This document shows, in pieces, positions 1 to 21,500 of a stretch of DNA of 64,000 bases; position 1 is the stretch's first letter, and every line of letters begins with the position of its first letter. Source of the stretch: Mantamonas sphyraenae STR306 (taxonomy: Eukaryota > Protista > CRuMs); the NCBI GenBank assembly GCA_026936335.1, contig JAPMXV010000010.1, positions 1 through 64,000 on the forward strand, given 5' to 3'. The position numbers were made by a program, and so were the translations under genes. Under the pieces are notes generated by a model. It worked only from the letters and a program-made list of their open reading frames with translations. It was not told the origin of the DNA and made no database searches.

Positions 1-15
1 ACCCTAACCCTAACC

Positions 16-56
<41 letters not shown>

Positions 57-188
57 CCCTAACCCTAACCCTAACCCTAACCCTAACCCTAACCCTAACC
101 CTAACCCTAACCCTAACCCCTAACCCTAACCCTAACCCTAACCCTAACCCTAACCCTAACCCTAACCCTAACCCTAACCCTAACCCTA
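1..188. repeat. Telomeric repeat array (CCCTAA)n = TTAGGG type; chromosome end
   Basis: About 31 tandem CCCTAA units from base 1, with two 1-nt variants (CCCTAAA near 32-38, CCCCTAA near 117-123), ending abruptly at ...ccctattcgtg. Confidence 0.99.
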
Positions 189-453
189 TTCGTGTTCTAT
201 CGTTGATATGATGAGTCCGGTCTAGGTCAAGTGAGTTGTGCTTGTGTCTGCTGGCGAGGTGGCTGAGTTGGGTGGTGACATGGGGCAGTGGGCAATGGGT
301 GGGAGAGGAAATGTCGCTGGTGAGTGGCCGTCGTCCTGCAACGCCGCGCAGTCAGCGATGCCCATCCGCCTTCAACGAAATATCACCAACACCCACAACA
401 TCCTCCACCAGTCCAACACAATCCACATACACTCCAGTACCACCACCACCACC

Positions 454-2902
454 ATGGACAACGACTACTCAAGCACTCCGAAGCAACAACACACTCCCAA
501 CACCTACCCAGCGTGCGTTCTGCCTTCCACTCCGTTTTCTGACTGCCCGCTTCTCCCGCTTCCTTGCCTTCTCCATGCCTCTGTCGCTTCTCTCCACTCC
601 TCCCCTGCATCTTCACTTCCCCATCACCCCCGCTGCTGCCTTCACCGCTCTTCTCCGATCCCCTCTCCCCTGTCACTGCCCTCCCCGTTGCCAGTTTCCC
701 GGTCTGCCAATCTCCTCCGTTTTCCCCTCTTTGCTCGTTCCGGCCTCCCTTCACCCCCGCTTCTGCCCTGACGGCGTCCATCCCGCCTTCCGCTCACCGT
801 TCCTACCCTGCGCTGCCCCTCCCCGTCTCCCACACAGCTACGGGTACATGGTCCCTCCCATGGCTGCCCACCCGTTTCCGAACATGCTGCCCGCCTCTGG
901 CGTACAAAACCCGTACCAGCACCCGCAACCACCCATCATCTGGGTCCCTGTCAACACCCACCCGCAGCAACACCACGCATATGCTCATCAGGGCCAACCA
1001 TACTACGTCTATCCTCCTCCGCCGCCTCCTCAGCCGCGACAAACTGCCCAGATGCACTTCGCTCAGCCTGCGTTGCACCCTCCGCCTGCTCAACCCACCA
1101 CAAACCACAACTGCGTCCCCAAACGCATCAGCCCTGCCTTTGTCGGAATCACACGGACCACATCCACTACCACATCGTCGTCCTCCTCTCACCAGGGCAC
1201 ACGGCAGACTGGAGACAGCGACGACGACGACGCAGAACAGGACACACACACACATGACACCGGCGACGTGGAGGACCTGATGTTCCTGAACTTTGGCCAC
1301 CGTGAACCACGGTCAATCTCCAGCAACTCAGAGTGGATGACCAGCTCATGGATGGAGGCGTACGAAGAAGACGGCGAGGCAAACGACGCACCTCAGCAGC
1401 ACGTGGACGACGAGTTGGAAACTCAGGACACACTCAGCATTGCAGGCACTGGTGAGGCCATGGATGAGGAGTATATGCCGCATGACGACACCGACGACGA
1501 CACAGACGACATGGAACAGGAGGACACGGACGATTGGCAGCCGAGACGCACAAGCAGCAGCCGCACACGACGTCGCAGAAGCCACAACAGCCGACGCACT
1601 GGTACACAAAAGATGAAAGGCAGCGGACAGCGCAGGCTCAGGGTCACGGCTGACAGTGGCACAGAGACAGGAACGTCGAGCACACGGGCAAGGAGGGCCA
1701 AGAACGGAGACAACGGCGCACGGAAGAAAGCAGGCGTGGACAAGACGAACAAGTTGCCAGATGGTGTTGTGCGCAAGGGCTGGGCAAAGGGACCCAGTGA
1801 CGAGCGCAGCCACAGCAACAAGAAGGAGCACACGGCACTGCTGAAGCACATGCACACTCTGGCCAACGAGCATCCCATTGACGACATCCCCGAGCTCATG
1901 ACACTGCAGGCGCGTGTTGTGGTATGCCATGGCACCCAGTTGACGCTTGTCCGACAGATTCAGCTCGCTCTGGGCAACATTCCCGTTTCCCAGGGCGACA
2001 TGGCCTTCTGCCTCACCCTTCTCGGCCGTGACATGGATCAAAAGGCGTGCAGCCATGCCATCCGCGACGCTGGTCTGGCCGTGGGTGTGACAAAGGCTGG
2101 GTTGAAGGTGTGCTGGCTGGAGGAGCCACACGACCACGGTGACCCCAACTACGCCCTCCTCCACCTGCTCATGACAGAGATGGACACACTCGGCGACAGG
2201 CCCCATCCCACCAGCTGGAAGGAGCACAAGCAGACCCAGCTGTGGCTGCAGAAAGCACGACGCCCTGCTGACAACGACAGCGACCCACACTGGACACAAT
2301 GCGACTACGACCACCACCTCACCACAAACAATGTGAGAAAATGGCATCCTGAGTCTGTGCGCAGTGGCTGGGCAAAGTACAGTCCCAGCGACGAGCGCGG
2401 CAGCTGCACGGAGCGGGAGTTCCAGACGCTGCTGGCGCACATGAAGGCACGCGCAGCCCAGCACCCTCGCCATCAGCACGCACACGAGCTCCAGGCACTG
2501 CGTGAACTGATCAACAACGGCAGCCTGATGTCCCTGGTGCGACACATCATCCTTGCGTTGGGCAACGTTGGCGTGCCGCCTGTCGACCTGGCCTTCTTTG
2601 TCCGTCTCCTCAGGCCACACGTCACCTGCAGGCAGGTGCAAATTGCCATCAGCAAAACCCTCAGCCGCGGTGTCACCTCCCTCTCCCTCAAGATCGCCTG
2701 GCTCGACAACCCCCGACCCAGCGACGCCACACTGCACATCCTCCTCCACAACCTCATCGACCGCATCACACCCCACATCATCACACGTCCCACCACCCCC
2801 GCACTCGTCAACGCCTACCCCATCCCCTCCTTCACCCTCGCCAAGCGCAAAGACCCTTCCTCCTCCTCCTCCTCCTCCTCCAAACGCCAGCGCCTCGAAT
2901 GA
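454..2902 (+). CDS. Subtelomeric family protein, copy 1 (Pro/Gln/Tyr-rich N-term, acidic tract, 2 repeats of an unrecognised domain, C-terminal bipartite NLS)
   Basis: ATG 454 (MDNDYSS). GT-AG intron 513-837 (gtgcgt...ctcac...cacacag) joins in frame to the 236..2902 ORF. The same structure is conserved in the paralogue. Confidence 0.8.
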
Positions 2903-3201
2903 ACCACCCCTTCATTCCCACACCCTTACCACTCACCCTCTCCTCCGCACCCAATCACCCTCTCTATCACCTCATCTGGCAGTGTCACCCACCCTCCCCA
3001 CACTCTCTCCTCCACATACTCCTCCATCCCACCACACCCAAACATTGCCTCCCCCTCCTCCCCATTCATCACCAACCCGTCTCTTTAGCCTCGTACACCT
3101 GTGCACCCCACCCATCCGCCTTCAACCAAAGTGTCACCAACACCCACAACTCCCTCCACCAGTCCAACACAATCCGCATACACTCCAGTACCACCACCAC
3201 C

Positions 3202-6200
3202 ATGGACAAAGACTACTCAAGCACTCCGAAGCAACAACACCCACCCAACACCTACCTAGCGTGCGTTCTGCCTTCCACTCCGTTTTCTGACTGCCCGCTT
3301 CTTCCGCTTCCTTGCCTCCTCCATGCCTCCGTCGCTTCCCTGCACTCCTCACCTGCATCTTCACTTCCCCATCACCACCGCTGCTGTCTCCTCCGCTCTT
3401 CTCCGATTCCCTTTATCCTGTCACTGCCCTCCCCGTTGCCAGTTTCCCGGTCGGCCAACCTCCTCCGTTTTTCCCTCTCTGCTCGTTCCAGCCTATTTTC
3501 ACCCCCGCTTCTGTTCTACCGGCGTCAATTCCGCCTTCCGCTCACCGTTCCCACTCCATCTTCCCCCTCCCGTCTTCCCCACAGCTATGCGTACATGGTC
3601 CCTCCCATGGCTGCCCAGCCGTTTCCGAACATGCTGCCCGTCTCTGGCGTACAAAGCCCGTACCAGCACCCACAACCACCCATCATCTGGGTCCCTGTCA
3701 ACACCCCCTTCCAGCAGCACACCGCATATGCTCATCAGAGTCACCCATACTACGCCTACCCTCCTCCGCCGCCTCCTCAGCCGCGACAAACCGCGCAGGT
3801 GCACGTCGCTCAGCCTCCGTCGCACCCTCCGCCTGCTCAACCCACCACAAACCACAATCGCGTCCGCAAACGCGTCAGCCCTGCCTTTGTTGGCATCACA
3901 CGGACCACATCCACCACCACATCGTCGTCCTCCTCCCACCAGGCCACACGGCAGACTGGAGACAGCGACGACGACGACGCAGACCAGGACACACCCACAC
4001 AAGACACCGGCGACGTGGAGGACCTGATGTTCCTGAACTTTGGCCACCGTGAACCACGGTCAATCTCCAGCAACTCAGAGTGGATGACCAGTTCATGGAT
4101 GGAGGCGTATGAAGAAAACGGCGAGGCAAACGACGCAACCCAGCAGCACGTGGAAGACCAATTGGAAACTCATGGCCCGCTCAGTTTTGCAGACACAGGT
4201 GATACTATGGATGAGGAGTACATGCCGCAAGAAGACAGCGATGACGACGCAGACGACATAGAGCAGGAGGGCACGGACGAGTGGCAACCGAGACGCACAA
4301 GTGGAGGCCACAGACGAGGCAGAGACCACAACAGCCGACGTTCTGGTCCACAGAAGATGAAAGGCAGCGGACAGAGCAGGCTCAGGGTCACGGCTGGCAG
4401 TCGCACCGAGACAGGAACGTCGAGCACACGGGCAAGGAGGGCCAAGAACGGAGACAACGGCGCACGGAAGAAATCAAGCGAAGACAAGACGAACAAGTTG
4501 CCACATGGAGTTGTGCGCAAAGGGTGGTCAGTGGGACACAGCGACGAACGCAGCCACAGCAACAAGGAGGAGCACGCAGCACTGCTGATCCACATGCACA
4601 CCCTGGCCAACGAGCATCCCATCGACGACATCCCCGACCTCATGACCCTGCAGGCGCGTGTTGTGGTCTGCCATGGCACCCTGTTGACGCTGGTCCGACA
4701 GATTCTGCTCGCTCTGGGCAACATTCCCCTCTCCCAGGGCGACATGGCCTTCTGTCTCACCCTTCTCGGCCGTGACGTGGGTCACAACGAGTGCAGACTC
4801 GCCATCCTCAAAGCTGGTCTGGCCATGGGTGTGACAAAGGCTGGGTTGAAGGTGTGCTGGCTGGAGGAGCCACACGACCACGGCAACCCCAACTACGCCC
4901 TCCTCCACCTGCTCATGACAGAAATGGACACCCTCGGCGACAGGCCCCATCCCACCACCTGGAAGGAGCACGAGCAGACCCAGCTGTTGCTGCAGAAAGC
5001 ACGACGCCCTGCTGACAACGACAGCGACCCACACTGGACACAATGCGAGTACGACCACCACCTCACCACCACCAACGTGGACAAGTGGCATCCTGAGTCT
5101 GTGCGCAGTGGCTGGTGCATCACTCCGTACAACGACGAGCGTGGCAGTTGCACGGCGCGGGAGTTCCAGACGCTGCTGGCACACATGAAGGCACGCGCAG
5201 CCAAGTACCCTCGCCATCAGCACTCACACGAGTACCAGTCACTTCGTGAGCTGATCAACAACGGCAGCCTGCTGTCCCTGCTGCGACACATCATCCTTGC
5301 GCTGGGCAACGTTGGCGTCCCGCCTGTCGACCTGGCCTTCTTCGTCCGCCTCCTTAGGCCACATCTCACCTACAAGCATGTGAATGGTGCCATCAGCGCC
5401 ACCCTCACCCGTGGCGTCACCCCCCTCTCCCTCAAGATCGCCTGGCTCGACAACCCCAAACCCAGCGACGCCACACTGCACACCCTCCTCCACACCCTCA
5501 TCGACCGCATCACACCCCACATCAACACACGCCCCACCACTTTCGCACTCGTCAACGCTCTCCGCATTCCCGAGCTTGTCCTTCCTGAGCCAACAGAGGA
5601 AGAGATGATGGCCGTGGACGATGGACTGCCAGATGGCGTTGTGCGAAGTGGCTGGACAAAGTGGCGCAAGAGCGAGCGCAGCCGCAGCAATAGGAAAGAG
5701 CACACGGCACTGCTGAACCACATGCGCACCCTGGCCAACGAGCATCCCATTGACCGCATCACGGACCTCATGACCCTACAAGCGCGTGTTGTGGTCTGCC
5801 ATGGCACCCTGAACACGCTGGTCCGACAGATTCAGCTCGCTCTGGGCAGCATTTCCCTTTCCCAGGGCGACATGGCCTTCTTTCTCACCCTTCTCGGCCG
5901 AGATGTGGATCAAGAAGCGTGCAGACTCGCCATCCACGACGCCGGTCTGGCCATGGGTGTGACAAAGGATGGGTTGAAGGTGTGCTGGCTGGAGGAGCCA
6001 CACGACCACGGCAACCCCAACTACGCCCTTCTCCACCTCATCATGACAGAGATGGACACTCTTGGCGACAGGCCCCATCCCACCACCTGGAAGGAGCACA
6101 AGCAGACCCAGCTGTTGCTGCAGAAAGCACGACGCCCTGCTGACAACGACAGCGACCCACACTGGACACAATGCGAGTACGACCACCACCTCACCACCAC

Positions 6201-6792
6201 CAACGTGGACAAGTGGCATCCTGAGTCTGTGCGCAGTGGCTGGTGCATCACTCCGTACAACGACGAGCGTGGCAGTTGCACGGCGCGGGAGTTCCAGACG
6301 CTGCTGGCACACATGAAGGCACGCGCAGCCAAGTACCCTCGCCATCAGCACTCACACGAGTACCAGTCACTTCGTGAGCTGATCAACAACGGCAGCCTGC
6401 TGTCCCTGCTGCGACACATCATCCTTGCGCTGGGCAACGTTGGCGTCCCGCCTGTCGACCTGGCCTTCTTCGTCCGCCTCCTTAGGCCACATCTCACCTA
6501 CAAGCATGTGAATGGTGCCATCAGCGCCACCCTCACCCGTGGCGTCACCCCCCTCTCCCTCAAGATCGCCTGGCTCGACAACCCCAAACCCAGCGACGCC
6601 ACACTGCACACCCTCCTCCACACACTCATCGACCGCATCACACCGCACATCACCACCCGCCCTACCACCACCGCACTGGTCAACGCCTACCCCATCCCCT
6701 CCTTCACCCTGCCCAAGCGCAAAGACCCTTCCTCCTCCTCCTCCTCCTCCTCCTCCTCCTCCTCCTCCTCCAAACGCCAACGCCTCGAATGA
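3202..6792 (+). CDS. Subtelomeric family protein, copy 2 (4 repeats of the same domain)
   Basis: ATG 3202 (MDKDYSS), homologous intron 3261-3584, ORF to 6792; contains an internal 1128-bp duplication. Confidence 0.8.
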   Translation: MDKDYSSTPKQQHPPNTYLACVLPSTPFSDCPLLPLPCLLHASVASLHSSPASSLPHHHRCCLLRSSPIPFILSLPSPLPVSRSANLLRFSLSARSSLFSPPLLFYRRQFRLPLTVPTPSSPSRLPHSYAYMVPPMAAQPFPNMLPVSGVQSPYQHPQPPIIWVPVNTPFQQHTAYAHQSHPYYAYPPPPPPQPRQTAQVHVAQPPSHPPPAQPTTNHNRVRKRVSPAFVGITRTTSTTTSSSSSHQATRQTGDSDDDDADQDTPTQDTGDVEDLMFLNFGHREPRSISSNSEWMTSSWMEAYEENGEANDATQQHVEDQLETHGPLSFADTGDTMDEEYMPQEDSDDDADDIEQEGTDEWQPRRTSGGHRRGRDHNSRRSGPQKMKGSGQSRLRVTAGSRTETGTSSTRARRAKNGDNGARKKSSEDKTNKLPHGVVRKGWSVGHSDERSHSNKEEHAALLIHMHTLANEHPIDDIPDLMTLQARVVVCHGTLLTLVRQILLALGNIPLSQGDMAFCLTLLGRDVGHNECRLAILKAGLAMGVTKAGLKVCWLEEPHDHGNPNYALLHLLMTEMDTLGDRPHPTTWKEHEQTQLLLQKARRPADNDSDPHWTQCEYDHHLTTTNVDKWHPESVRSGWCITPYNDERGSCTAREFQTLLAHMKARAAKYPRHQHSHEYQSLRELINNGSLLSLLRHIILALGNVGVPPVDLAFFVRLLRPHLTYKHVNGAISATLTRGVTPLSLKIAWLDNPKPSDATLHTLLHTLIDRITPHINTRPTTFALVNALRIPELVLPEPTEEEMMAVDDGLPDGVVRSGWTKWRKSERSRSNRKEHTALLNHMRTLANEHPIDRITDLMTLQARVVVCHGTLNTLVRQIQLALGSISLSQGDMAFFLTLLGRDVDQEACRLAIHDAGLAMGVTKDGLKVCWLEEPHDHGNPNYALLHLIMTEMDTLGDRPHPTTWKEHKQTQLLLQKARRPADNDSDPHWTQCEYDHHLTTTNVDKWHPESVRSGWCITPYNDERGSCTAREFQTLLAHMKARAAKYPRHQHSHEYQSLRELINNGSLLSLLRHIILALGNVGVPPVDLAFFVRLLRPHLTYKHVNGAISATLTRGVTPLSLKIAWLDNPKPSDATLHTLLHTLIDRITPHITTRPTTTALVNAYPIPSFTLPKRKDPSSSSSSSSSSSSSSKRQRLE
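4498..6673 (+). repeat. Intragenic direct repeat with 1128-bp (376-aa) period
   Basis: For example 5041 caatgcgagtacgaccacc recurs at 6169. Antisense ORFs 4893..5204 and 6021..6332 are near-identical at offset 1128. Confidence 0.95.
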
Positions 6793-6822
6793 ACCACCCC
6801 TTCATTCCCACACCCTCCCCAC

Positions 6823-8438
6823 TCACTCTCCCCTCCCCACCCACCCAATCACCCTCTCCATCACCTCATCTGGCAGTGTCACCCACCCATCCCACCCTCC
6901 CCGCTCCACATACCCCTCCATCCCACCACACTCAAACATCACCTCCCTCTCCTCACCATTCATCACCAACGCCACCTCCATCGCCTCATCCACCTCCTTC
7001 CCACACTTCACCCAATGCCACTCTCTCCTCCATACCTTCTCCCTGATGATCCCCATGGACGTCCTGCGCACTCGAGCTCCCCAAGCCCGCAACAGCCCAA
7101 CAGCTGCGTCCCTTTCCTCACCGAGCGCCGAGTCCAGTGCGCTCACCTGCCTCGGACACGCGTTTACGTTTACGCCCCACACCTTGAGCATCGCCATCAC
7201 CTCCACATCTCCTGTCCCTGCTGCCGCCACGAAAGCTTCAGCTTTCGCACGATTCTCCCTTTGCGTCGCCTGTGCCTTTGAACTTGTCACCCCTTTCAGC
7301 TTCCAGCATGTCCGATTCCTCTTCATAGCTTCCTCCAACGCGGTCTCTCCGACAGACGTCGACTGGTTCCTCCCCACGTCAAGCACACAAATGCTTTGGA
7401 TTCCCTTTGCCATTGCTGCCAGCCCCACATCTCCAATCCGATTCCCGTACACGCTCAGTTCCTCGATTGTGCTGCTCTCTCCCATTCCTCTTCCCAGCGA
7501 AGCAGCTCCATCATCTCCAATGCCGTTGCTCGCCAGTGAAAGTTTTGCCAGACGCGCACCTTTCCCCAGGGCCCTCCCAAACTCAGCTGCCCCATCATCC
7601 CCCACCGCGTTGTTGTCCAGATACAGCGACTCCAGATACTCGTTGCTAACCAGTGCATGCGCCAACGCCTCTGCTGCCTTGTTCCCCAGGCGGTTCGACC
7701 GCAGCGTGAGAGTTCGCAAGCGAGATCCCTCCAGTCCCAGCGCCAACTCTACGCCCACGCCATCCTCGATCTGATTGTAGTCCAAGTGCAAGACTTCCAG
7801 GTGTCGGTTCTCCTTCAGGTCCTGGCCCAGCACGCCCGCGCCTTCCTTGACAAAGTTGTTTTGCAGGCTGAGGTGCTGCAGCGACGAATTCACCGCCAGG
7901 GCCCTCCCAATCGCCTCGCCTCCCTTCGCCCCAATATTGTTGTGGTCCAAAAACAGCAGCTGCAGCGCGCTGTCCCCCTGCAGGAGCATTGCCAAGGCCC
8001 CTGTGCCCGAGTCGCCGATACCGTTGTGGCTCAAGCTCAGCCCCTGAAGCACACAGTTCCCCACCAACCCGTTGCACAACACATCCACCTCTGTATCGCC
8101 TAAGCAATTGTTATCCAACGTGAGCACCTGCAATGTCCAACCAACCGCAGCCTTGGCCAACGAGACCATCCCTCCTCCCTCCCCGAGTCCGCACCGAGAC
8201 GCGTGCATCCTCCTCACCGACGTAGTGCGCATCAACGCCTTTCCCAACACCTCCCACCCCTGTTCTCCGAGATGCAATCCACTCACTTTCACGTCCTGGC
8301 CCCCCTGTTAGTCCACACCCTCTCTCCAGCTCTCCCACCCCAACGTACCTCCCCGGCCTCAGCCAAAGCTTTCTCCACCTCCCCATCATCCCGCTCCAAC
8401 AATTCCTTCCACTTGGTCACTCCTCTACCGCTATTCAT
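6823..8438 (-). CDS. RI-like leucine-rich repeat protein with ankyrin repeats and a C-terminal F-box-like motif
   Basis: About ten 28-aa LxxLxLxxNxIGDxGAxxLAxAL repeats, then AAAGTGDVEVMAMLKVWGVNVNA (ANK), ending WVTLPDEVMERVIGW. ATG 8438; a 44-nt intron 8348-8305 (GTACGT...ACTAACAG) restores the frame. Confidence 0.8.
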
Positions 8439-8531
8439 GCCACTTGCCAAGTGCGATTCGATTGAACTAGCGCCTGTATGCGGCGCGAGGTGTTTTGAAA
8501 AATACAATTCACTTGCCCCCGCCCGCGCAAC

Positions 8532-11500
8532 CTACACCCCCCCGTTCACCACAAAGTCCCCGCTCATCATCAACGGATACCCCAGCGGCGGCTGACCCGC
8601 CTCAATCACCATGTTCTTCAACAACATCCGGTTGCTCTGAATCGCATACCGCTCCTCGTCGTCTGCCGCCAGAAACATCAGCTCCACCCCCATCCACCCC
8701 CACCCGCCACGCACTGCCTCGTACTCCACCCGCCCCACCTCCACCTGTTGCTCGCTCATCGTCAGCATTTCTGCCTCAAACACCCCCATCTCGTCCGCTG
8801 CCTGCCCCACCCGCCACAGCTTCTCCGTGTGCCGCCCCAGCGCGCGCGCCCACTCCTCCTCTTCACCCGCTACACCCACAAACAACTCCTTATCATACTC
8901 TTCCAGCTGTTCCTCCACCTCGTCCTCTGTCTCCCACCCGCCGTACACCAGGCCGTCCACCGCAAGCTTGAACGCGTACCGATAGGCCTTGACGCACGCC
9001 CGACGCACACGCTCGCTCTCCAGCACACGGCCCAGCCCTATCGACGGCGGAAAGTTTCCCTGCAGACAATTCCACACGTGGCCCTTGCCCGCCACCCCGG
9101 CTTTGAACCCCAGCGGAAACGGCTCCCGGTGCGTCAACACAAACAAGCTCGCCGCCATCTTGGCAATCCCATCACGCCTCCCCTCCTCCGCTTTGTCCAC
9201 CATCTGCTTCGGCATCTGCTCCGCGGTCCTTCCCGCGTACTCCACAGCTGCTTCCTCCGAAAGCCGCACCAACTCCTGTTCGCCACCGTCTTTGCGTAGC
9301 ACATACACCAACGCCTGCAAGAACCGTTCCGGGATCTCCTCAAGCACCTCGGGGCTGTCGATGATCCCTGTCAGCACCATCTTGCTCTGTGAGTAGGTCC
9401 TCAGCGTGATTTGCGTTCGCGCACGCAACACTGACCAGAAAAACTGGTTCCGCGTCGAGTAGAATCCGTTGTTCCCTGCCCGTGCATCCTCTCCGTCCCC
9501 CGTCCGCTTCGCAGACGCATGCTCAAACACGTCGTCCACACGCCCAGCTTCCACTGCGTGGCATGACGTCTGCTGAAGTTCCAGACCCTTTACCACAAGC
9601 ACATACGCCTCATGGTGCCTCTCCAGCACCTGCACCCATAGAATACGTGTTTGGTGCCTCAGCAGCAGCGTACACCCCGGCTGCACGTCCCCCGCCGCTC
9701 CGCTACGCAGCTTCGACACAAGTCGCGGCACAAGCTGCGGCAGCAGATGCAGGTAGAACGACGCATCCTCCCCGCTGCTTTCCTCGCCGTTCCCTTCCGC
9801 CCAGTGCCGCACCGGCCGTGCAAACCCCACCAGGAACAGCGGCAGGCCAAACACAGGCAGCAACGGTGCGTCCAAAGCGGCACCAATCAAAATCACCAGG
9901 GCTGTCACCGGCGCAGCCGCATACACTCGCTTCAGCATCCCGGACGTGTTGCGCACACGCGCCTTTGGTTCGTGCGCCAGAGAGTGTCCCGCAAGCACCA
10001 CAAAGAACGTCTTGTGCACTATCTGCGACCCACGGTGCAGCGCGAGGCCAACCAAACACAACCACACTTCGAGCTCCACACTCACCGCCGCCTGTGTCAG
10101 CAACGCCACCCCAACCTCCATCCCGGCCCACGTGCTCGCGTGCCACGGCCAACGAACCGCGCGGCACACGAGCAGCACCTGCCACCACGTAGACGCCCTG
10201 CGCACCTCCAGGCTAACCACAACCACGCATAGCACCGCGGTCACCTTGTCCAGCACACGGTACACCTTGCCCAGCGTCTCTCGCTGCCCCCGTTTCACGA
10301 CCCCATTTCGCCACAGACCGCCCACCACGAATGGCTGCTGCAGGTGTTCGCTTGCCCACTGCACACACGTCACACACAGCACCACAATCCCTTCCACCTG
10401 TGCGTCGTGCCAAGCCACAAGCTGGCCGAGAACCCCGCTCACAACTCCCAGCAGTATTGCCACGCACACGTGCAGCCCCGCCGCCTTGAACCTCTCTGCA
10501 GGCGTGCTACGCATTGCCACCAGCACACTGTGCGCCGTCGCACTGCCGTACCCATCCACGGCCGCAACTGTGTTGCCGTTGCCCGTCGTCGTGCTCACCG
10601 TCAGCAGACCACCGCCCCACGCTGCATTGCTCGCCAAAAGGTACGATGTACACACGCACACAGGCACCGTCAACGCGCCCAGCACGCCAGACAGCTGCCA
10701 CAGCACTACCACGCTGCCGCCTCCAACCGCAAGCATCGCCGCTTGACGCGCATTCGTTGCCGCCGCCGTTCCTCCCAGCACACGCACATTCACCTGCTCG
10801 CATGCCCACGCCATCAACGCGTCGGCCTGTGGCAGCATCCCTGCCACGTACAGCACCGGCACAGCCGCTGCCACCCACAATGCTGCCTCGCTTGTCCCAC
10901 TCACAAACGCCCCGATACCCGCAATAATGATATGATACACAGCCCGCGAGAACCGCGACACCTGTAGCCGCCCTGCAGCATTGTACACGTTTGCATCCAC
11001 GGGCTCTCGCCCCACCAGACCCCACGTCGAGCTCGCCACTGCCAGCCACGCAAGCACCACTCCCGCCACGTGCCAGTCCAGCGCAAACATGCTTGCCAGC
11101 AGCACCATCCCCGCATGCATCAAAAACCCAAACACGCAGCTTGCCACCACAACCCACCACGCACGCGCTTCCCCCAGCGCAAAGTCCCACGCCGACGATC
11201 CAAATTCCCCGCCAAACGCCCACACCGCCTCGTCCGATATCACTGCTTGCAGCGACTCCACCTCTCCAACCTTGGCACCTGCCCCGCGCGGACGCACAGC
11301 CTCCACGGCAAGCACAAGCAGCAACGCAACCCCTGCGGCACACAGCACACAGCCCGCCTCGTCAGTAACGGCTTTGCATCACACCTCCCCACACTCCCCA
11401 CCACTCACCTCCGCCCACCAGCGACCCTTCCACGCGTCCAAGCACGCCCAGCTGTACCAGAAGCGTGCACACCACTCCGCTCACAAACGGAACCCCCTGC

Positions 11501-11865
11501 AACACCACAATCAGCGCATACAGAGCCCACGGCGCTTCCTGATCCGCTCGCGGCCACCGCGCCCCGCCCAGCCACGATGCAACCAACCGCTCTCGCAGCA
11601 GGCCCCACTTGCCATACAGCGGCGCCACGTCTCGCTCCTGCCTATGAACAGGCGCCAGGTTGTTCTTCCGTGGCGCACGTGGCCCGGCCTCCTCCGTTTC
11701 CTCATCCGAGTCGCTGGACGTGTTTGCAAACACGTGTTCCCCAATGTCCTTTGGCTCCTTCTCCTCTTCTCGCTTCTCTTTCGCCATTGCCGCCGCCGCA
11801 GACCCGCGCACCAGCACATCGTCGTCATCCGAGTCCGAGTCCGAATACACAAATGCCTCGATCAT
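8532..11865 (-). CDS. Pecanex-like multi-pass membrane protein (PCNX4-like)
   Basis: Many TM segments, a KGLELQQTSCH motif and C-terminal DDEERYAIQ...LKNM...QPPLGYP pecanex signature. Intron 11408-11333 (GTGAGT...ACTGAC...GCAG) links ORFs 11362..11865 and 8532..11348. Confidence 0.85.
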
Positions 11866-11879
11866 CTGCGCTGCACCGT

Positions 11880-13168
11880 CTATTGCTCTTCTTTCTCTTG
11901 CCTCTCCCGCCGCTGCAGCACAAACACACTACACACCATCCCGCCCATGCACACTGCCTGCATGTCCTCCAGCAAAAGGCCCTCGCCGCACTCTCCCAAC
12001 GCAGCAAACATCGCCCGACGCTTCGTCGTCATCAGCACCACCCGCGCCCCGTCTGCACACACGCGCACGCACTCCCTCACCAGCGGCCCAAACAGCGCTC
12101 GGATGCTGTACTTGTTGCCCACACGGTGGCCGTTTGGCAGATCGCTCACCACCACGTTCACTGTCCCGTCCTCCACCTCGCTCAGCTTCTCCGTGCAAAG
12201 ATCATGCTCCAGCACCTCCACATCCACGCCCCACACCTTTGCATTCGCACGTGTCATCTCCAGCGCCTCATCGTAAACGTCGTTCCCCACCAGCCGCACC
12301 TTGCCCCCGGCCGCTGCCGCCGCCTCCATCAGCGTCATTGCTCCGCCCACACATGGATCCAGCACCACGTCACCTTCCTTTACACCCGCCAAACGTGCCA
12401 ACCCATACGCCACGGGCCCCTGCAGGCTCACCCGGCCTTTTACGTGCTGAGCCCGCTCCGCGATCGTCACACGTTCCGTTTCCAGGTACGCCAGCATGTG
12501 TGCATTGTGCACACGCAGACGCATCGTCGCCGTCGCCTCGTTGCTCAGGTCCACTTGCAGCTGCCTCCCCAGCACATCCTCCATGGCACCCGCATGCCCC
12601 TCCGCAAATTCCCGCGCCGCTTGCTGGCTCGTGAAGAGGTGCAGACCCAGCCTTTCGCACAACACCCGGTATCTTGCCGCCTCGCCCAACTCCAGCAACA
12701 CCTTTGACACAGCTTCCCCTCCGTCCCAGCACGCCTTCCCGAACGCCTCCAGCTGACCCTTCCACTCCTCGCTCTTGTTCTCCCGCTTTGCTTTCTTGCT
12801 CGCAGACTCTGTCAGCAGATGCAATGCATCCACGGCTGCCTTGCCCCGCCTTTCCCACACCCCACAAACGGTTCCTCCACTTTCAGGCTGTGATCCCGCG
12901 CTCCCTTTCCAAACACACTCTCCACACCGCTGTCCACCTCTCCCTCGCCTGCCAGCAGTCCAGCGTGGTCCACCATGCGCAACCCCTCCACGTCGGGCCT
13001 CCCCACCTGTCCTCTCAACACCAGCACTCCGTGCGTCGCCACTTCCAGCCCCACCAACCCCTTCACCTCCTCCAGTTCCTTCACCGCAATTTCCTCCATG
13101 CCCATCGGCACCGCATACACCCAATCCACCTTTACATCCCCACTGCTGGCAATCTCGCGAACGCTCAT
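11880..13168 (-). CDS. THUMP-domain RNA methyltransferase (THUMPD2/3, Trm14-like); frame break near 12860
   Basis: N-term VPMGMEEIAVKEL; SAM motif VVLDPCVGG; motif IV VVSDLPNG. N- and C-terminal halves lie in different frames. Confidence 0.75.
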
Positions 13169-13214
13169 CCCTTTGTTCGTCGTTTTCCTTCCCACTCCCG
13201 CGCACACCAACCCC

Positions 13215-15616
13215 TCACATCGACCTCTCGATCTTCTCCAACACCTCCACCGCCGCACTTGGCAGACGCGTTCCGGGGCCAAAGATCGCAGACACGCCCG
13301 TCTCGTACAAAAACTCGTAGTCCTGGTGCGGGATCACTCCACCGCACACCACAAGGATGTCGTCCGCACCCTCTGCCTTCAGCGCTTCAATAAGCTGAGG
13401 CACAAGCGTTCGGTGTCCTGCCGCCTGCGAGCTCACGCCCACCACGTGCACGTCTGCATCGATTGCTTGGCGCGCCACCTCGGCCGGCGTTTGGAACAGC
13501 GGTCCCACATCCACATCGAAGCCCAGGTCTGCAAAGCCCGTCGCAATCACCTTGGCTCCACGGTCGTGCCCATCCTGGCCCATCTTTGCCACCATGATGC
13601 GCGGACGACGCCCGTGCTCCTCCTCAAACCGCGTCACCGCTGCCATCGTCTCTGCAAACTCGGCGTCCGTGTCTTGGTACTCTGTCGAGTACACGCCGCT
13701 CACAAGGTCGCCCGTGCCCTGGTATCTACCAAACGCCTTTTCGATGGCCAGTGAGATCTCTCCCACCGTTGCCCGCTCTCGGCTTGCCTTCACCGCCAGA
13801 TCGAGCAAGTTGCCCGTTCCGTTCGTCGCCGCCTCCTCAATCGCCTCCAGCGCTCCTCGCACCGCTTCGATGTCCCGGCTCGAGCGGATGCGTTCCAGAC
13901 GCTCCATCTGCGCCTGCAGCACCTTGCTGTTGTCGATGCTCAGCACGTCGATCGGATCCTCCTTCTCCAGCCGGTACTTGTTCACTCCCACAATCACGTC
14001 GTGACCACTGTCGATGCGCGCCTGCTTCCTTGCCGCGCTCTCCTCAATGCGCAGCTTCGGCATCCCGCTCTCCACCGCCTTGGACATCCCGCCCATTTCC
14101 TCCACCTCTGCAATCACGGCCCCGGCCTTGGCCACAAGCTCCTCCGTCAGCGCCTCCATCATGTACGACCCTCCCCACGGGTCGATCACCTCCGTGATCC
14201 CGGTTTCCTCCTGCAGGATCAGCTGAGTGTTTCGCGCCACACGCGCGCTCGTTTCTGTCGGCAGGCCGATGGCTTCGTCAAATGCGTTTGTGTGCAACGA
14301 CTGCGTGCCGCCCATCACTGCCGCCATGGCCTCCACCGTCGTGCGGATGATGTTGTTGTACGGATCCTGCTCCGTCAGCGACCACCCGCTCGTCTGACAA
14401 TGCGTGCGCAGCAGCAGCGACTTGTCGTTCTCTGGCGCAAACTTCTCCTTCATCAGTGTGCTCCACAGCTTGCGTGCCGCGCGCAGCTTCGCCACCTCCA
14501 TGTAAAAGTTCATCCCGATGCCAAAGAAGAACGAGAACCGCGGCGCAATCTGGTCCACCGTCGAGCCTGCCTTGATGCCCGTGCGCACGTACTCCAGACC
14601 GTCCGCAATCGTAAACGCAAGCTCCAGTGCTGCGTCCGCACCGGCCTCCTGCATGTGGTAGCCGCTGATCGAGATCGAGTTGTACAGCGGCATGTTCTTT
14701 GCCGTGTACGCCATGATGTCTCCTACAATGCGCATCGACCCTTCCGGCTTGTAGATGTACGTGTTGCGCACCATAAACTCCTTCAGAATGTCGTTCTGGA
14801 TCGTCCCGGCCAACTTGTCTGCGCTCACCCCCTGCTCCTCCGCAGCCACAATGTACATGGCCAGCACGGGGATCACTGCCCCGTTCATCGTCATCGACAC
14901 GCTCATTTTGTCCAGCGGGATCCCGTCAAACAGGATCTTCATGTCCTCCACCGAGTCCACGGCCACGCCGGCCATCCCCACGTCCCCTCGCACGCGCTCG
15001 TGGTCCGAATCGTACCCTCGGTGCGTCGCAAGATCAAACGCAACGCTCAATCCCTTCTGCCCGGCCGCCAAGTTCTTCTTGTAGAACCGGTTCGACTCCT
15101 CTGCCGTCGAAAACCCGGCGTACTGCCGAATCGTCCACGGCCTGTGCGTGTACATCGTCGCGTACGGCCCCCGTGTGTACGGAAACTCTGCCGACGTCAT
15201 GTCTCCCTTGTGGCCTTCCGGCAGGTCCGACTCCAGGTACAGCGGCTTCATCGTAATCCCCTGTTTTGCCGTGTCACCAGACCCCAACTCCCCGTGTCAG
15301 CCCGGAGCTTTTCCCAAACCATTTCCCTCTTCCACTTCCCGCTCTGCCCCGACACCTCTGCGGCCCGCAACCACGCCTACCCCCCACACACACCGCCTTC
15401 TTTTTCTCCCTTGCCCCACCCACTCACTTCGGGCTTCTCCACAAACAGGCTATCCAGACTGTTGCCTCGAAGTTCCTTGCTCGCCTGCTTCTCCCAATGC
15501 TCCGGAAACCTGCTCTCCCCACGCAACGACGCCTGCGTCGCCAGCCCGCGCTGCGCCACCGCAGACACCGCCTCCTTGGCCGCCACAACCTGATGCTTTG
15601 ACACTCGCGCAAACAT
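13215..15616 (-). CDS. MMUT: Methylmalonyl-CoA mutase, mitochondrial (adenosylcobalamin-dependent)
   Basis: [31 protein letters not shown]-type motif and B12-binding [12 protein letters not shown]. Exon 1 (ATG 15616, transit-peptide-like, WEKQASKEL) joined by intron 15427-15261. Confidence 0.97.
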
Positions 15617-15724
15617 CTTCTTCTTCTTCTCTGCTCTTGTTCTTTCAGGTGCACACACTCCGCGCGCTTGACCCGCCGCCCCATCCACGCCAAACCCTCC
15701 CGTCTTTCCCACCCCTCAACCTCC

Positions 15725-18536
15725 ATGACCACATCCTCATCCTCATTCCGCGTCAACCCCATCACCGACGACCTCCTCGCTCTCCACAACGGCAAGTGTT
15801 CCCCCGGCCCCAACCCCCCCCACCTCCGTCCCAACTAACCCGCCGCTCCTCTCCACCCACAGAGCTTCAGTCCTTGGGAGGAGGAGGTTCAGCCACAGTG
15901 GCCCCATCCCACGTCTCCATCCGCATCAAGCCCGAGTTTGCCTCACAAGCAGGCGAGTTTTTCAAACTCAAAACCGACGACTACATCGTCTGTGACGGAA
16001 ACGATATTGTCATCCGGTACGCCCATCCCCCCTAAGCCACCCATCCTTCCCCTTCCCCCCACCCGCCCTTTCCCTGCAGCCCCGCTCCCCGCAAACGGCT
16101 TTGCGCGCCACTCACCCACTGTCCTCCCGCAGGGATCCGCGCTGCGCCCAAAACACCCCGCTCAGCCAGGCTGTCAAACGTATGCCCTTTCAGCTTGCCA
16201 TGGATGCCTCCTTCAACCAGCAAGACGTCTACGACGCACTGGGCGCCGACCTCCTCGATCGTGTCTGGCAAGAGTACAACGTCACTCTCCTCGCCCTCGG
16301 TGCACAGGGCACGGGCAAGTCACACACCCTGTTCGGCCGCAACACTCCGTACACAGACACTCCCGACGACCTCGACGACACAGACGGCCTCCTCACCCTC
16401 CTCCTCCGCGACATCTTTGCCCAGCTCCGCCGCAAGAACGCAGACTCCCTCGTCCTCCTCTCGGCCTGGGAAATCGACGCTGACGGCTCCTACGACCTCC
16501 TCTCTGGTGCTTCCACTGCCACGCGCGTCACCAGCCCCGACGACATCCGCCACGTCCAGGCTCGTGACTTTGCCGAAGCTCTCCAGCTCCTCACCGCCTC
16601 ACGCCTCAAGAGCAAGAACTGGGCCGGCAACCTGCACGACCTTGCCCATGTACAAAACAGCGCCCACGCCTTTGTCCGCATCCTCATCTACGACGCCTCC
16701 CGCGAAGTCGGCACTCGCCTTTGCCTTGTCGATCTCGCCGGCTCGGGCTCTCTCTCCCTTTCTGGCGAGCCCAGCTCCTCCCAGCTCGATCCATCCCTCG
16801 AGCGCCAACTCCACACCCAGCTCCACACTGTACACAAGATGATCAACGACATGGCCGAGGTCAACGAATCCGGCAAGCCCCGCACCCTCGGCTCCGCTCG
16901 CGAATCCATCCTCTCTCGCGCCCTCATGCCTCTCCTCGGTGACAACGTCCACCAATACGTCCTCGGCACCCTCAGCGCCCATCCCGACCACTATCTCGAC
17001 TCTCTCAACTCCCTCCGCGTCTGCCAACGCGCAGCTCGCATCAACAACGCTTGCTGGCGCTATCCCAAGGCCGCTCCCCAAGTTGTCGAGATCTTCCAGG
17101 CCGAAAGTGCCATCCCTGTTGGCATGAACCTCGATGCCATCGATCTTGACTCCTTTGGCACACACTCCTCCTCTCTCCGCAACTCCACCGTCCGCCAGAA
17201 CGCCACCACTGTCGCTCTCGTCGGCACCAGCTCCGACCACCACCCACCGCTCCGCCCCTCCTCCTCCTCCTACCTCAAGTCACGCTCCAATCCCCAACCC
17301 AAGCCCTCCTCCCACTCCTCCTCTCTCCGCGACGAGATCAACCGCCTCATGCAGAGTATCTCCTCCTCTTCCACAACCACAACCACCTCCTCCTCCTCCT
17401 CCACAACCACAATGCGCCTCCAAGACCTCGCCTCCCGCCAACCCCGCCAATCCCACCCCAAATCCCCCCCACCATCCCAACCCTCCCCACAACAACCCTC
17501 GCCCCAACCCAACCCCCTCTCCCTCACCGACTTTGAACGAGAACTCGAAACCGTTAGCACCCACTACGAAATCAAACTCGAGGAGCAGCGTCTCGAAAAC
17601 GTCCAACTCCGTGCCAAACTTCGCCATCTCGAACAACACAGCCAGCACGCGGACGTCATCCAGGCCTACCGCACGGAAACAGAGCAGGCAAAGGCTGAGA
17701 TCGACCAACTCAAAACAGAACGCTTCAAACTCATGATGTCCCAGCTCGACGACAGCGCCCAGAAGCTTCAGCGCCAGTCCCGCCTCAACAAATCCTCAAA
17801 GGGCCTCACTTCCCACGCCATGCTCTCCAAAACAGCCTCCCAGCTCGATCAGGTGCGCGAAGAGAAACGCGACCTCGAGCGCAAGCTCCGCCGCTCTCAG
17901 TCCCAACTCCACGCATACAAGGAGACCATGGAACGTGCACGTGCTCTCGAACAGCTCGTCGACAAGAAAGAGCAAGTCGTCGCCATGCTCCAGAACCGCC
18001 TCGCCGAAAATGCTCAGAGCCTGCACGACTGGCAATCCGAGCGCGACCAGCTCCTCTACCGTGCCCGTGAACACGAGTTTGCCAATCAACGCGCTCGTGA
18101 AACCCTCTCCCAGGTCGTCGACGCCCTTCGCGAGTACACACAACGCAAGGAGCAGCGCCTCAACGACCTCGAATCCGCCTCTCTCACACTCTCTTCCTCC
18201 ACCACCTCGTCATCCTCCTCCCACCCAGACACAGACTCCCCCACCCTCTCCGACACCCTCTCCCTGTCCCACCAGCTCGTCCTGCGCCTCGAAAACCAGG
18301 TCGCTCAGGACAAACCCACCCTCGGCAAACTCGTACGCCAGCTGAAAAAGACCATCAACAAGGCCATCGGCCTCGACGACCAAAGCCTCAACTCTCTCCA
18401 CCAGCACGACCACTGGATGCCCAAGGTCGTCTCCCAGATGAAGGACGAAATGACCGATCTCGACAACCTCTTCCAGCACCTCCACCGTGCCATCTGGGCC
18501 TCCGACGACGCAGACGTCCACCCTTCCACACAGTAA
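15725..18536 (+). CDS. Divergent kinesin-like protein (N-terminal motor, C-terminal coiled coil)
   Basis: VSIRIKP, YNVTLLALGAQGTGKSHTLFG (P-loop), LVDLAGSG, RESILSRALMPLLG. Introns 15792-15862 (GC-AG) and 16017-16132. Confidence 0.8.
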
Positions 18537-18571
18537 ACCCCTTGCTCTCCACCCTTGCCTCACCAACACAA

Positions 18572-21500
18572 ATGGCCACCATCACCTCCACCGGCGAGCG
18601 CGTCTCCTCCACCTTTGTCACCGACGAGGAGATCCTCCAGGATGTCGAGAGCAAGCTCAACCACGCCAAAAAGGAGCTCATGACCCTCTTCATGACCACA
18701 GATTCCCTCTACGAGTCCATGGCCGCCAACGTCGACGAGCAAATCGAAGCCCAACGGCCGCCTCAACAAGAAACAAGGCCCTACTCCGCACGCTCCACCT
18801 CCAGCGCCTCTTCCTCCTCTACAACCTCCACCGTCGTCAGCGACAACATGCACAGTGACTACTACAGCTCTGTCGTCGACGCTGGCCTTGGCTACAGCTT
18901 CGGCTACCTCAACGCCAATCCCAATGCCCGCCCCACCTCTGCATCCTCCACATCCACCACTTCCTCCACTTCCACAGATGCCACAGATGTCTCCTCCTCC
19001 TCCGCTTTCAACTCCCGCGACTATCAGGCCCTCTCCTCTGCCCTCAAGCGACCCACAAGCGCAACCTCCCGCCTCGCACAAAACGTCCGCATGGCCTTTC
19101 TCGAAGACACCACCGCCCATTCCAGCGTCGCCAAGTTTTCTGCGCAGCCCACTTTCTCCGGCGGTGCCAGTGGCAAAAAGGCCATCGACATTGACTTTCG
19201 CCAAAAAGTCCAGCAGATCCGCGCCGAGAACGAGGAGCTCCTCGCCAGCCTCACCTACACACACACAGACCTCGACAACCCGCTCCTCCCCATCCAGAAG
19301 CGCATGTCTCTCGATGAGCACGACGAATCCAAAGACATGCGCCAGTTCCGTGCACGCGTTGACCTCATCCTCGACCGCTTTGCAGAAGAGGTGAGTTACG
19401 CGCCGAATGTCTCGCAACGGTCACCTTTTCACGCGCACCCCGCCCCATCACACCCTCACACACTTCCCCGCACCCCCAACCCCGCCTTCTCCTGCCTCCT
19501 CTCCCACACATCCCCCACAGCTCTTCAACGACATCCGCCTAGCCAACCAGAACATGGCCGACAAGCTCGAACATCGCGGCGTTGTCTTTGATCACAGCGA
19601 GGAGCTCAAGGGCATGCGCCAAGAGCTTGCCACTGCACAAACTGCACTCCGCGTACGTCTCGCATCCCCTTCCTCCCCTTTCCCCCCTCCCCCTCCCTCT
19701 CCCGCAATTGCTCACCCACCTTCCCTCCACAGAAATCAGAGGATCGCGTCAACAAGCTCAACCTCGAGAATCAGGTCCTCAAGGGCCACCTTCTCCGACG
19801 CACCGAGGAGATCAACACCCAACGCAATACCTTTTACAAAGAGCTCTTCACCCTCAAGGAGCAGCTGTACCAAAAAACAAAGCTCGGCCGCACTCAGGAA
19901 CTCGATCCAAACTACGGCAACGTGTTTGAAACCATCATGGACATGGAAAACAAACTCGACGAACGCAACCTCGCCAAGAAGCACGCCCGCGACGAAAACG
20001 GCGACCCCAAGGAGCCCCGCGGCCTGTACCATTCAAACTCCCAAGCCTCCCTCTACTCCAACAGCGAAGGCGACCGCGACGACCACTCCGACACAGAAAG
20101 CGTGGCCTCTTCTGCTTCCCAACGCAGGCGCAGACGCTCCTCCTCAGAGCGAGGCAAGGGCAGGAAAAAGGCCATCCGTGCCCTTCGCCGCCAGCGTTCT
20201 CGCGATCACATGAACGACAGCGACTCTGAAGGAGGCGACTCCGACAGCATCTCTGCACGCTCCATTGGCGACGAGGACTACGCAAACATGAAGGTCGAGA
20301 AGCTCAAGCGTGCATTCGAGGCCGAAAAGGCAGAGATCATCACTCGCCACGAACGCGAACTCCAGCTCAAGGACCTTGAGCTCGACCTCATGAAGCGTGA
20401 AATCGACCATGAGATCCGTGTGCGTGAGGAGGAGTCCCGTGAGCAGCTCGAACTCATGCGACGTGAAGCTGAGAACAAGATCCGCCTCGAACGCAAGCTC
20501 CGCCTGAAAAACAAACTCGGCGACGACGACTCCTCCGACGGCAGCGAATCTCAACGCCCACAACGACGTGGCTCCCTCATTCGCCGCTCCTCAAAGTCCC
20601 GTGCCTCCGACTCATCCTCGCCTGTCTCCCCCACCGACGACGCAGCTGCTTCCCGACAGCGCTCCGCCTCCTTCTCTGTCCAGGCTCGCCAAAGCATCGA
20701 AAACCACAACAAAGAGAAACTCAAGCAGCTGTATGCAAAGGACAACCACGACGACATTGCAGGCGACAGCGACACCAGCGACGACAGCGACAACGACGAC
20801 CGCCAAACCTCGGCTTCGACTGCCTCTGCCGACCTGGACACCCAGCCCTTCACCCCTTCTCCCACGGGTGCCACTTTGGGCACGTCTGCCTCCTCCCTTA
20901 CGCTCAACACAGCTGCAGCCAACGCAGAAGGAGACGGCGACGACCCCAAGCGCGTCCTCCGCCATGCTCGATCTACTCACTCCAAGCATGACGGCATGGC
21001 AAACGCCGGTTCCACGTCCGCAAGCAAGCCTGCACCTCCCAAGGAAGCCAGCGTCCTCGACACTGAGTACCAGAGCGAGCGTGCGACCGTGAACCTCATC
21101 CAGGAAAACTGGAAGGAACGCATGGAAGACATGAAGCGCGAACACGCACGCACCATTGACAAGCTCAAGAAAGACTTTGCCGATGAGAACGCCCAGCTGC
21201 GCGCTCTGCTCAAGAAGAACCTCGAAGAAGAGCAGCAGACCGATCTCGACTCCTTGTCCCGCGTCGCCGACAAACTTGGCAAGGATCTCCGCGAAACGGG
21301 CACAATGATCATGCACGAGGCACAGTCCATGAACGAAGGCCGCGAAGACAGTCCCCACGAAGCAAGCAAACGCAAGCAGCGTCTCATTGCCCTCGAAGAG
21401 CGCCTCCAGCAGGCCATGAACGAGATGCTCAACATCAAAAAGACCTTTACCAAGGCCCGCGAATTCCGTGAGACTCTCGAAGCCAAGATCGATGCCCAGG

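Follow-up and report, generated by a model that had tools for sequence, protein, structure and literature searches.

A subtelomeric family of modular orphan proteins with position-specific diversification in Mantamonas sphyraenae

We analyzed a 64,000-nucleotide (nt) stretch of the Mantamonas sphyraenae STR306 genome (assembly GCA_026936335.1, contig JAPMXV010000010.1, positions 1 to 64,000, forward strand), referred to here as the window. It begins with a telomere. Two paralogous genes on the plus strand, gene 1 and gene 2, follow the telomere repeats and encode proteins built from tandem modules of two types, A and B. They belong to an orphan family in M. sphyraenae that is expressed, spliced and located at chromosome ends. 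The module scaffold in this family is constrained, diversification is concentrated at specific positions, and the copies are reshuffled by recombination.

Two modular genes beside a telomere

The long open frames of the first two genes in the window span 236–2902 and 2899–6792, both on the plus strand. The ATG at 454 is out of frame with the long frame of gene 1, and direct translation of 454–2899 yields 14 stops. This ATG is the true start, because a 325-nt GT..AG intron at 513–837 joins both frames and places exon 1 (454–512) and exon 2 (838–2902) in frame. The exon-intron structure of gene 2 was assigned by homology with gene 1. The exon 2 translations of both genes were used in the protein searches.

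Gene 1 contains one AB pair and gene 2 an ABAB array, as defined by a VRxGW motif and hidden Markov model (HMM) envelopes. The A profile matches B modules at 55–72 bits, the reciprocal match is also found, and A and B modules are 32–38% identical over about 155 aligned columns. These cross-profile matches bear out an earlier reading of the DNA letters (the sequence-only reading), which had described homologous A and B units arranged as AB and ABAB. The P/Q/Y-rich N-terminus, the acidic tract and the tail resembling a nuclear localization signal (NLS) that it described are all present, together with a basic tract; the NLS is read from the sequence alone. The tails of both genes have a KRK..(S)n..KRQR pattern. 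Their serine runs (2843–2902 and 6730–6771) are (TCC)n microsatellites of about 8 and 14 units, so the spacer in the NLS-like motif differs among copies. No hydrophobic N-terminus or membrane segment was visible on reading the translations of both genes.

The features of the locus are listed below. Run X4 is described in the next section and the structure model of module B in the last; pI is the isoelectric point.

1–188, no strand: telomere repeat (CCCTAA)n, about 31 copies, from the sequence and Tandem Repeats Finder (period 6, 97% matches)
189–453, plus: conserved leader from telomere to ATG, common to 21 of 21 sampled left ends, mean pairwise identity 0.89
454–512, plus: gene 1 exon 1, ATG at 454, 19 codons and 2 bases, mean pairwise identity 0.94
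513–837, plus: gene 1 intron, 325 nt, GTGCGT...polypyrimidine...CACAG, with the GT..AG joint seen in run X4
838–2902, plus: gene 1 exon 2, open frame, stop codon included
839–1183, plus: P/Q/Y/H-rich low-complexity segment of gene 1, 115 residues with zero D or E
1184–1744, plus: gene 1 Ser/Thr run, then acidic tract (44 D+E in 190 residues), then basic R/K tract
1745–2335, plus: gene 1 module A, 197 residues, pI 6.6, from the VRxGW motif and HMM envelopes
1784–1798, plus: variable loop of gene 1 module A after the invariant GW, column 15 with omega about 5.5
2033–2068, plus: variable helix of gene 1 module A, the counterpart by homology of helix 5 in the B model, with hot sites at i, i+3, i+4, i+7 and i+8
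2336–2839, plus: gene 1 module B, 168 residues, pI about 10, the sequence used for the structure model
2372–2389, plus: variable loop of gene 1 module B past GW
2618–2656, plus: variable helix 5 of gene 1 module B, model residues 95–107
2840–2902, plus: gene 1 C-terminal tail, with basic cluster, (TCC)n Ser run, second basic cluster and stop; bipartite-NLS-like
2903–3201, plus: intergenic spacer, a duplicate of the 3' flank of gene 2 (about 82% identical), then a second leader copy (89–94%)
3202–3260, plus: gene 2 exon 1, by homology with gene 1, with X4 depth present in 3189–3388
3261–3584, plus: gene 2 intron, 324 nt, splice signals as in gene 1
3585–6792, plus: gene 2 exon 2, stop included
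4489–5079 (A), 5080–5583 (B), 5617–6207 (A) and 6208–6711 (B), plus: gene 2 modules ABAB
6712–6792, plus: gene 2 tail with a longer (TCC)14 run
4973–5495 and 6101–6623, plus: identical 523-nt tract, two copies in gene 2

Family copies at chromosome ends and their expression

Family members are the first gene inside nearly every chromosome end, located about 270 bp from the repeats, transcribed away from the telomere from a conserved leader and spliced once. The published FALCON assembly of M. sphyraenae comprises 25.06 Mb in 78 contigs with 59.19% GC, and TTAGGG repeats are found at both ends of 59 contigs (PMC10492846). The genome paper reports no subtelomeric family and never uses the word "subtelomeric" (PMC10492846), and a literature search combining Mantamonas with subtelomeric returned one unrelated review only. 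The assembly that we searched contains 25,061,354 bases in 78 contigs. Of the 410 first-look candidates returned by an AB query, at least 108 were scored as matches, with 82–87% identity. The frame is intact, without a stop, in 107 of the 108.

Every plus-strand match (n = 56) starts no more than 12.8 kb from the contig start. The minus-strand matches (n = 52) are located at high coordinates; they lie 2.8–4 kb from the right end on contigs C24, C46, C66 and C69, the four on which this distance rests. The sole internal match is on contig C29. The family genes therefore always point away from the telomere, being on the plus strand at left ends and on the minus strand at right ends. This fixed orientation is what copying of chromosome tips via recombination would produce. 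The occurrence of copies at both left and right contig ends agrees with the sequence-only reading, which had proposed a lineage-restricted modular family concentrated at chromosome ends.

At all 21 sampled left ends, the telomere repeats are followed by the same leader, exon 1 and intron. The ATG is located 270–335 bp past the repeats in 17 of them, those with the exact start string. The intron donor is found at 21 ends and the acceptor pattern at 19. Mean pairwise identity among ends is 0.89 for the leader, 0.94 for exon 1 and 0.91 for the intron. The leader probably houses the promoter and the 5' untranslated region. Among ends, the leader and intron are conserved about as well as the coding modules (0.88–0.89 at the nucleotide level), and the intron distance of 0.10 is smaller than the scaffold synonymous distance of 0.18. 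Either more frequent homogenization of the telomere-proximal 850 bp or regulatory constraint on it would account for this.

Evidence for transcription comes from run X4, which behaves as RNA. Its depth is 0 in 589–788, inside the gene 1 intron, and rises from 6.5 in 189–388 to 2743 in 389–588. In the spacer bin 2989–3188 the depth is 13, and in 3389–3588, in the gene 2 intron, it is 35, as opposed to 7350 in the bin that follows. Where X4 depth is zero or near zero, runs X1 and X2 do have coverage. The joint between 512 and 838, with GT..AG borders, has a depth of 2401 and is found in X4 only. An adapter-like loose end is located at 382 in X4, and RNA-like contigs begin near this position. The read contigs were placed at 95% likeness, and the evidence holds for the family, not strictly for this copy. 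At the family level, the spliced joint and the intron without depth document the expression on which the sequence-only reading depended.

Related sequences were also found in two biofilm metagenome runs (X5 and X6) as pieces of 61–229 nt that are 95–99% identical to the genes. One biofilm contig shares the stretch 2070–2258 of the window, and its divergence sets in exactly upstream of 2070, where module A has its variable helix. Judging from these pieces, a Mantamonas-like organism with other versions of the family lives in that habitat.

GC content in the window is 0.56–0.64. GC skew is strongly negative (−0.26 to −0.41, a C-rich plus strand) over positions 1–20000 and weaker deeper inside. 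The convergent neighbor at 6823–8292 on the minus strand encodes a leucine-rich-repeat protein (LRR_6, E 3e-23) and ends 31 bp from the gene 2 stop. An open frame at 8532–11348 on the minus strand (938 residues) contains a Pecanex C-terminal domain (E 3e-16). Pecanex is an animal-type membrane protein family, present here in a CRuMs protist.

Position-specific diversification of the modules

In an alignment of 57 A and 56 B modules, taken from 30 loci in addition to the window, the variation clusters in the same three patches in A and in B. One is the loop past the invariant GW, another is a pair of residues where helix 3 begins, and the third comprises positions i, i+3, i+4, i+7 and i+8 on a single helix. 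The sequence-only reading had recognized clustered substitutions in two patches. The clustering holds, but the number is three, the additional patch being the two residues at the helix 3 start. Diversification in the helix that it singled out is found on one face, at fixed positions. The variable helix occurs in 49 distinct versions among the 57 A modules and in 53 among the 56 B modules. A small set of exchangeable cassettes was rejected as an explanation, as nearly every helix is unique.

In pairwise Nei-Gojobori comparisons, the scaffold has a synonymous divergence (dS) of 0.18, a nonsynonymous divergence (dN) of 0.07 and a dN/dS of 0.37–0.42. At the hot codons dN is 0.71 and dS is 0.48. 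Parsimony counts on a tree, with Bonferroni correction, placed 6 A and 13 B sites above the neutral expectation, with omega values of 2.5–6.7, and omega is below 0.3 at more than half of all sites. The site-wise dN/dS check proposed earlier has thus been run; it revealed an excess at loop and helix sites on a constrained scaffold, and substitutions are not evenly spread.

Where A and B columns are homologous, their nonsynonymous counts correlate (rho 0.36, p 5e-6), and 6 of the 12 top sites are shared (p 4e-5). Synonymous counts at the same columns are uncorrelated (rho 0.07), which argues against mutational hot spots as the sole cause. This comparison is independent of how the hot sites were chosen. 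The module scaffold is under purifying selection, and the loop, the two residues and one helix face are replaced faster than synonymous sites.

Exchange between copies is also apparent. Within gene 2, the two copies of the 523-nt tract are identical base for base, and the A parts otherwise differ by about 10%. This is the signature of recent gene conversion or unequal crossover inside gene 2. New versions arise and spread via recombination and gene conversion between chromosome ends. Subtelomeric diversifying (contingency) families are characterized by many copies at chromosome ends and by diversifying selection with recombination, and both traits are found here.

Predicted fold and candidate functions

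The domain had not been recognized from the letters, and our searches led to the same result. Pfam searches of both proteins, with E values up to 1, returned no family, and specifically no Myb/telobox or other known telomere-binding domain and no reverse transcriptase, endonuclease or helicase. PDB sequences compared with the family profile produced no match, including none to a known helix-turn-helix (HTH) family. A word-indexed protein search with the AB profile and gene 1 residues 296–684 gave no match, and an HMM search of 1.84 billion representative proteins gave 0 matches. A scan of JGI metagenome contigs returned 83 pattern matches, zero of them confirmed, and a language-model atlas queried with AB gave no usable match. 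This genome's own proteins did not surface in the protein collections either, and the negatives are silent on close kin such as other Mantamonas species.

An AlphaFold2 model of gene 1 module B, based on an alignment in which A and B modules were mixed, has a predicted local distance difference test score (pLDDT) of 78, a predicted template modeling score (pTM) of 0.77 and eight helices. The hot sites in this model are residues 13–18, in a loop closed by a small bridge; residues 63–65, at the start of helix 3; and R99, Q102, I103, S106 and K107, in helix 5. In an exhaustive structural comparison (VIA), winged-helix/HTH and CAP-like domains that bind DNA account for about 46 of the 50 best rows, with Z scores of 3.2–4.9 (best 4.9). 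They include CRP/FNR, MarR, PadR, GntR, Rrf2, Fur and forkhead, and the winged-helix (WH) domains of ORC, MCM, Hel308 and CED-4. These weak rows align to model residues of about 56–132, in helices 3–5. In the alignments, helices 4 and 5 correspond to the HTH, and the variable helix 5 is located at the position of the recognition helix. A second structural look was led by MarR-DNA, Zur-DNA, the gyrase CAP-like domain and CAF-1 WH, with Z up to 4.2. According to the tool, Z values under 8 (under about 13 for helical proteins) can reflect a mere common arrangement, and values under 5 lie in its noise range.

The model is consistent with an HTH-like fold of the module, but the fold is unproven. 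The HTH proposal of the sequence-only reading is weakly supported: the weak rows are almost all winged HTH proteins and place the variable helix as the recognition helix, but there is no confident match, no wing and no profile match. An alternating hydrophobic pattern past the variable helix could be a strand. Myb/SANT, homeodomain and psq/transposase-type HTH were rejected, as none had a Pfam match and the structural rows are of winged-helix types instead. Four outcomes had been named beforehand as arguing against a DNA-binding family: a confident match to a known non-DNA-binding family, the lack of an HTH in the predicted fold, substitutions spread evenly over the domain and absence of expression. 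None of them was observed, and specifically no confident match to a non-DNA-binding family arose in Pfam, Foldseek or the exhaustive comparison.

Additional information on function is provided by rare relatives. Three places in the genome join modules to an extra domain of about 450 residues, two on C29 (one intact, one frameshifted) and one on C69. The C69 gene (264175–270669, minus strand) is non-terminal and encodes about 2100 residues. Its product has a separate N-terminus and four AB pairs of divergent sequence, and it ends in a FEN1/XPG-like domain and a tail with three KRQRVEE repeats. One open frame on C29 encodes 3224 residues in the order N-term-ABABAB-A'-nuclease-like-N-term'-ABAB. 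The extra domains in the C69 and C29 copies are 43–44% identical. Between these two diverged copies the motifs WLVDCG, FTE, EAD, DSD and a later TD are invariant, and the invariant acidic residues are D41, E93, E163/D165, D188/D190 and D236 in the numbering of the C29 copy. Their spacing resembles that of FEN1 D34, D86, E158/E160, D179/D181 and D233. The language-model neighbors of the domain are Asteroid, XPG_I_2, FAM120A, Pox_G5 and vhs, at 0.86–0.88, with 9 of the 10 best in one clan; we treat this as a lead only. The two genes in the window do not contain the FEN1/XPG-like domain. If its identity as a nuclease holds, the module arrays in the C29 and C69 genes would be aimed at nucleic acid, because the nuclease-like domain is fused to the same arrays and the modules would direct its activity.

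The ancestral family form may be represented by the C69 gene. Gene conversion is suggested by the third A module of this gene, which resembles a typical telomeric module (350 bits). On C29, the longest contig, the family genes are located in 76000–105999, where those on the plus strand (76.0–85.9 kb) face those on the minus strand (94.6–104.2 kb). This layout is that of a whole small chromosome without telomeres. The cluster may have been left behind by an integration or fusion event, or it may reflect an assembly join.

Our preferred explanation, with a probability of about 0.45, is that the family consists of nuclear, modular, HTH-like nucleic-acid readers with a diversifying specificity surface. 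According to this proposal, the proteins would act in the nucleus, as their tails suggest. Each module would be an HTH-like reader, with the modeled variable helix and loop touching nucleic acid, most likely DNA, and the module array would specify a composite target. The repertoire would be kept diverse, for example versus mobile or foreign DNA, or for variable gene control, and the rare internal relatives would couple arrays to a FEN1/XPG-like nuclease. The basic B modules (median pI 10.1) and the hot sites, which are rich in S, K, N, R, T, Q and H with almost no E, are compatible with this proposal.

Several observations weigh against nucleic-acid reading. With a median pI of 6.2, the A modules are slightly acidic, and Leu occurs often at the hot sites (11–15%). 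The AlphaFold2 model obtained for the AB pair from paralogues alone was of poor quality (pLDDT 48.7) and was left out of the fold search. Foldseek searches with the module model against PDB and BFVD found nothing, nor did an ESM-Atlas shape search, and all structural matches have Z below 5. The β-hairpin wing is absent from the model, where a short helix (115–121) and a loop, with pLDDT of 57–75, are found instead. The hot sites were picked after viewing the variation, and the site counts are based on parsimony on a single tree despite evident recombination. The extra domain had no match in Pfam (XPG_N, XPG_I, XPG_I_2), PDB profile or word searches. The expression evidence, derived from contigs at 95% likeness, is not copy-specific.

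A different target is conceivable. The modules may recognize protein or ligand as an immune-like intracellular repertoire of variable receptors or adaptors, with the HTH-like core only a scaffold. Host-parasite recognition typically involves diversification at specific positions that leaves nearly every module unique, hydrophobic residues are frequent at the hot sites, the adjoining subtelomeric gene encodes a leucine-rich-repeat protein, and the weak fold match does not suffice to establish DNA binding. We consider this rather unlikely in view of the bipartite-NLS-like tail and an acidic-plus-basic layout as in nuclear factors. The relatives also carry a FEN1/XPG-like domain, a type acting on nucleic acid, and the weak structural rows are nearly all DNA-binding winged helices.

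Two further explanations start from the location of the genes. The family could be a selfish or near-neutral subtelomeric repeat, spread by break-induced replication and gene conversion with little organismal role, the hot spots being unconstrained surface. Such a repeat would account for the fixed orientation, the highly similar non-coding leader and intron at 21 of 21 ends, the tandem copies with the identical 523-nt tract, and the raised synonymous divergence at hot codons (0.48 vs 0.18). It is improbable, as the frames are open in 107 of 108 matches, the transcripts are spliced and the scaffold dN/dS is 0.37–0.42. Relaxation alone cannot yield hot sites that exceed the synonymous rate 2.5–6.7-fold, and the same sites are hot in A and B with uncorrelated synonymous counts. 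Alternatively, nuclear-type features and a location that, at almost every end, lies about 270 bp inside the repeats would fit telomere or subtelomere chromatin proteins that bind TTAGGG repeats or the conserved leader and cap, silence or pair ends. However, a constant target needs no hundreds of unique recognition helices, the Pfam search revealed no Myb/telobox or other telomere-binding domain, and the location of a gene is uninformative on where its product acts. We regard a telomeric chromatin role as very unlikely.

An extension of the nucleic-acid-reader proposal is that the family is a natural re-targetable reading system of a new structural type. Each module of 170–200 residues would read a short site via its variable helix and loop, and arrays would read longer targets; the C69 and C29 nuclease fusions would be a cutting form for genome defense or homing-like spread of the subtelomeric unit, and the hundreds of nuclease-free telomeric copies a diversifying binder library or module reservoir. 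This extension is speculative, and we think it doubtful.

Several known systems share some of these properties. DUX4/D4Z4 in mammals also consists of repeated subtelomeric units with an open frame for a nuclear protein with tandem HTH domains, and recombination between ends spreads and homogenizes it. Unlike the Mantamonas family, in which an orphan domain with a hypervariable helix is found at nearly all ends, DUX has recognizable homeodomains with conserved recognition helices on few chromosome arms. TAL effectors of Xanthomonas have tandem modules in a fixed frame, hypervariable residues at fixed positions, an NLS (here read from the translation) and an acidic region. However, TALE repeats are 33–35 residues long and read one base each with a variable di-residue, whereas the Mantamonas modules have 168–197 residues, of which about 10–15 vary in three patches. 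There is no sequence or fold relation between the two in Pfam and Foldseek searches. The vertebrate KRAB zinc-finger clusters are large, fast-evolving families of arrays whose recognition-helix positions are under positive selection and which are believed to keep up with mobile elements. Unlike these, which have C2H2 fingers and a repressor domain and are not telomere-terminal, the Mantamonas family has no recognized repressor domain.

Yeast Y' elements and fungal TLH genes are open-frame-bearing units at many ends in a fixed orientation, spread by recombination. They encode helicases with little diversification, whereas the Mantamonas genes lack a helicase or any Pfam domain. The products of var, VSG and MSG are surface or secreted proteins, in contrast to the Mantamonas translations, which show no hydrophobic N-terminus or membrane segment and have an NLS-like tail. 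The central three helices of the module superpose on winged-helix/CAP-like domains (MarR, PadR, CRP/FNR, forkhead, ORC/MCM WH) over 55–97 residues, with a root-mean-square deviation of 1.7–8 Å and Z of 3.2–4.9. The module differs from them in having no profile match or modeled wing and four to five extra helices, and the Z scores are below the trusted level for helical proteins. FEN1, XPG and Asteroid (PIN-like 5' nucleases) are the nearest language-model neighbors of the C29/C69 domain, and the spacing of the motifs that are invariant between its two copies resembles that of the FEN1 acidic residues, but this putative nuclease domain has no Pfam, PDB-sequence or database match.

CRuMs, the group that includes Mantamonas, is a deep eukaryotic branch that has hardly been studied. 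Almost all of the approximately 66 chromosomes of M. sphyraenae begin and end with a gene of one orphan family, whose variable positions behave like a recognition code. Should the modules bind DNA or RNA, they would represent a new protein architecture for programmable recognition, independent of zinc fingers, TALEs and PPR/PUF repeats, with a natural nuclease-coupled form encoded alongside them in this genome. Even without nucleic-acid binding, the family would be a clean model of how chromosome ends generate and keep diverse proteins in a free-living protist with no host immune system to evade.

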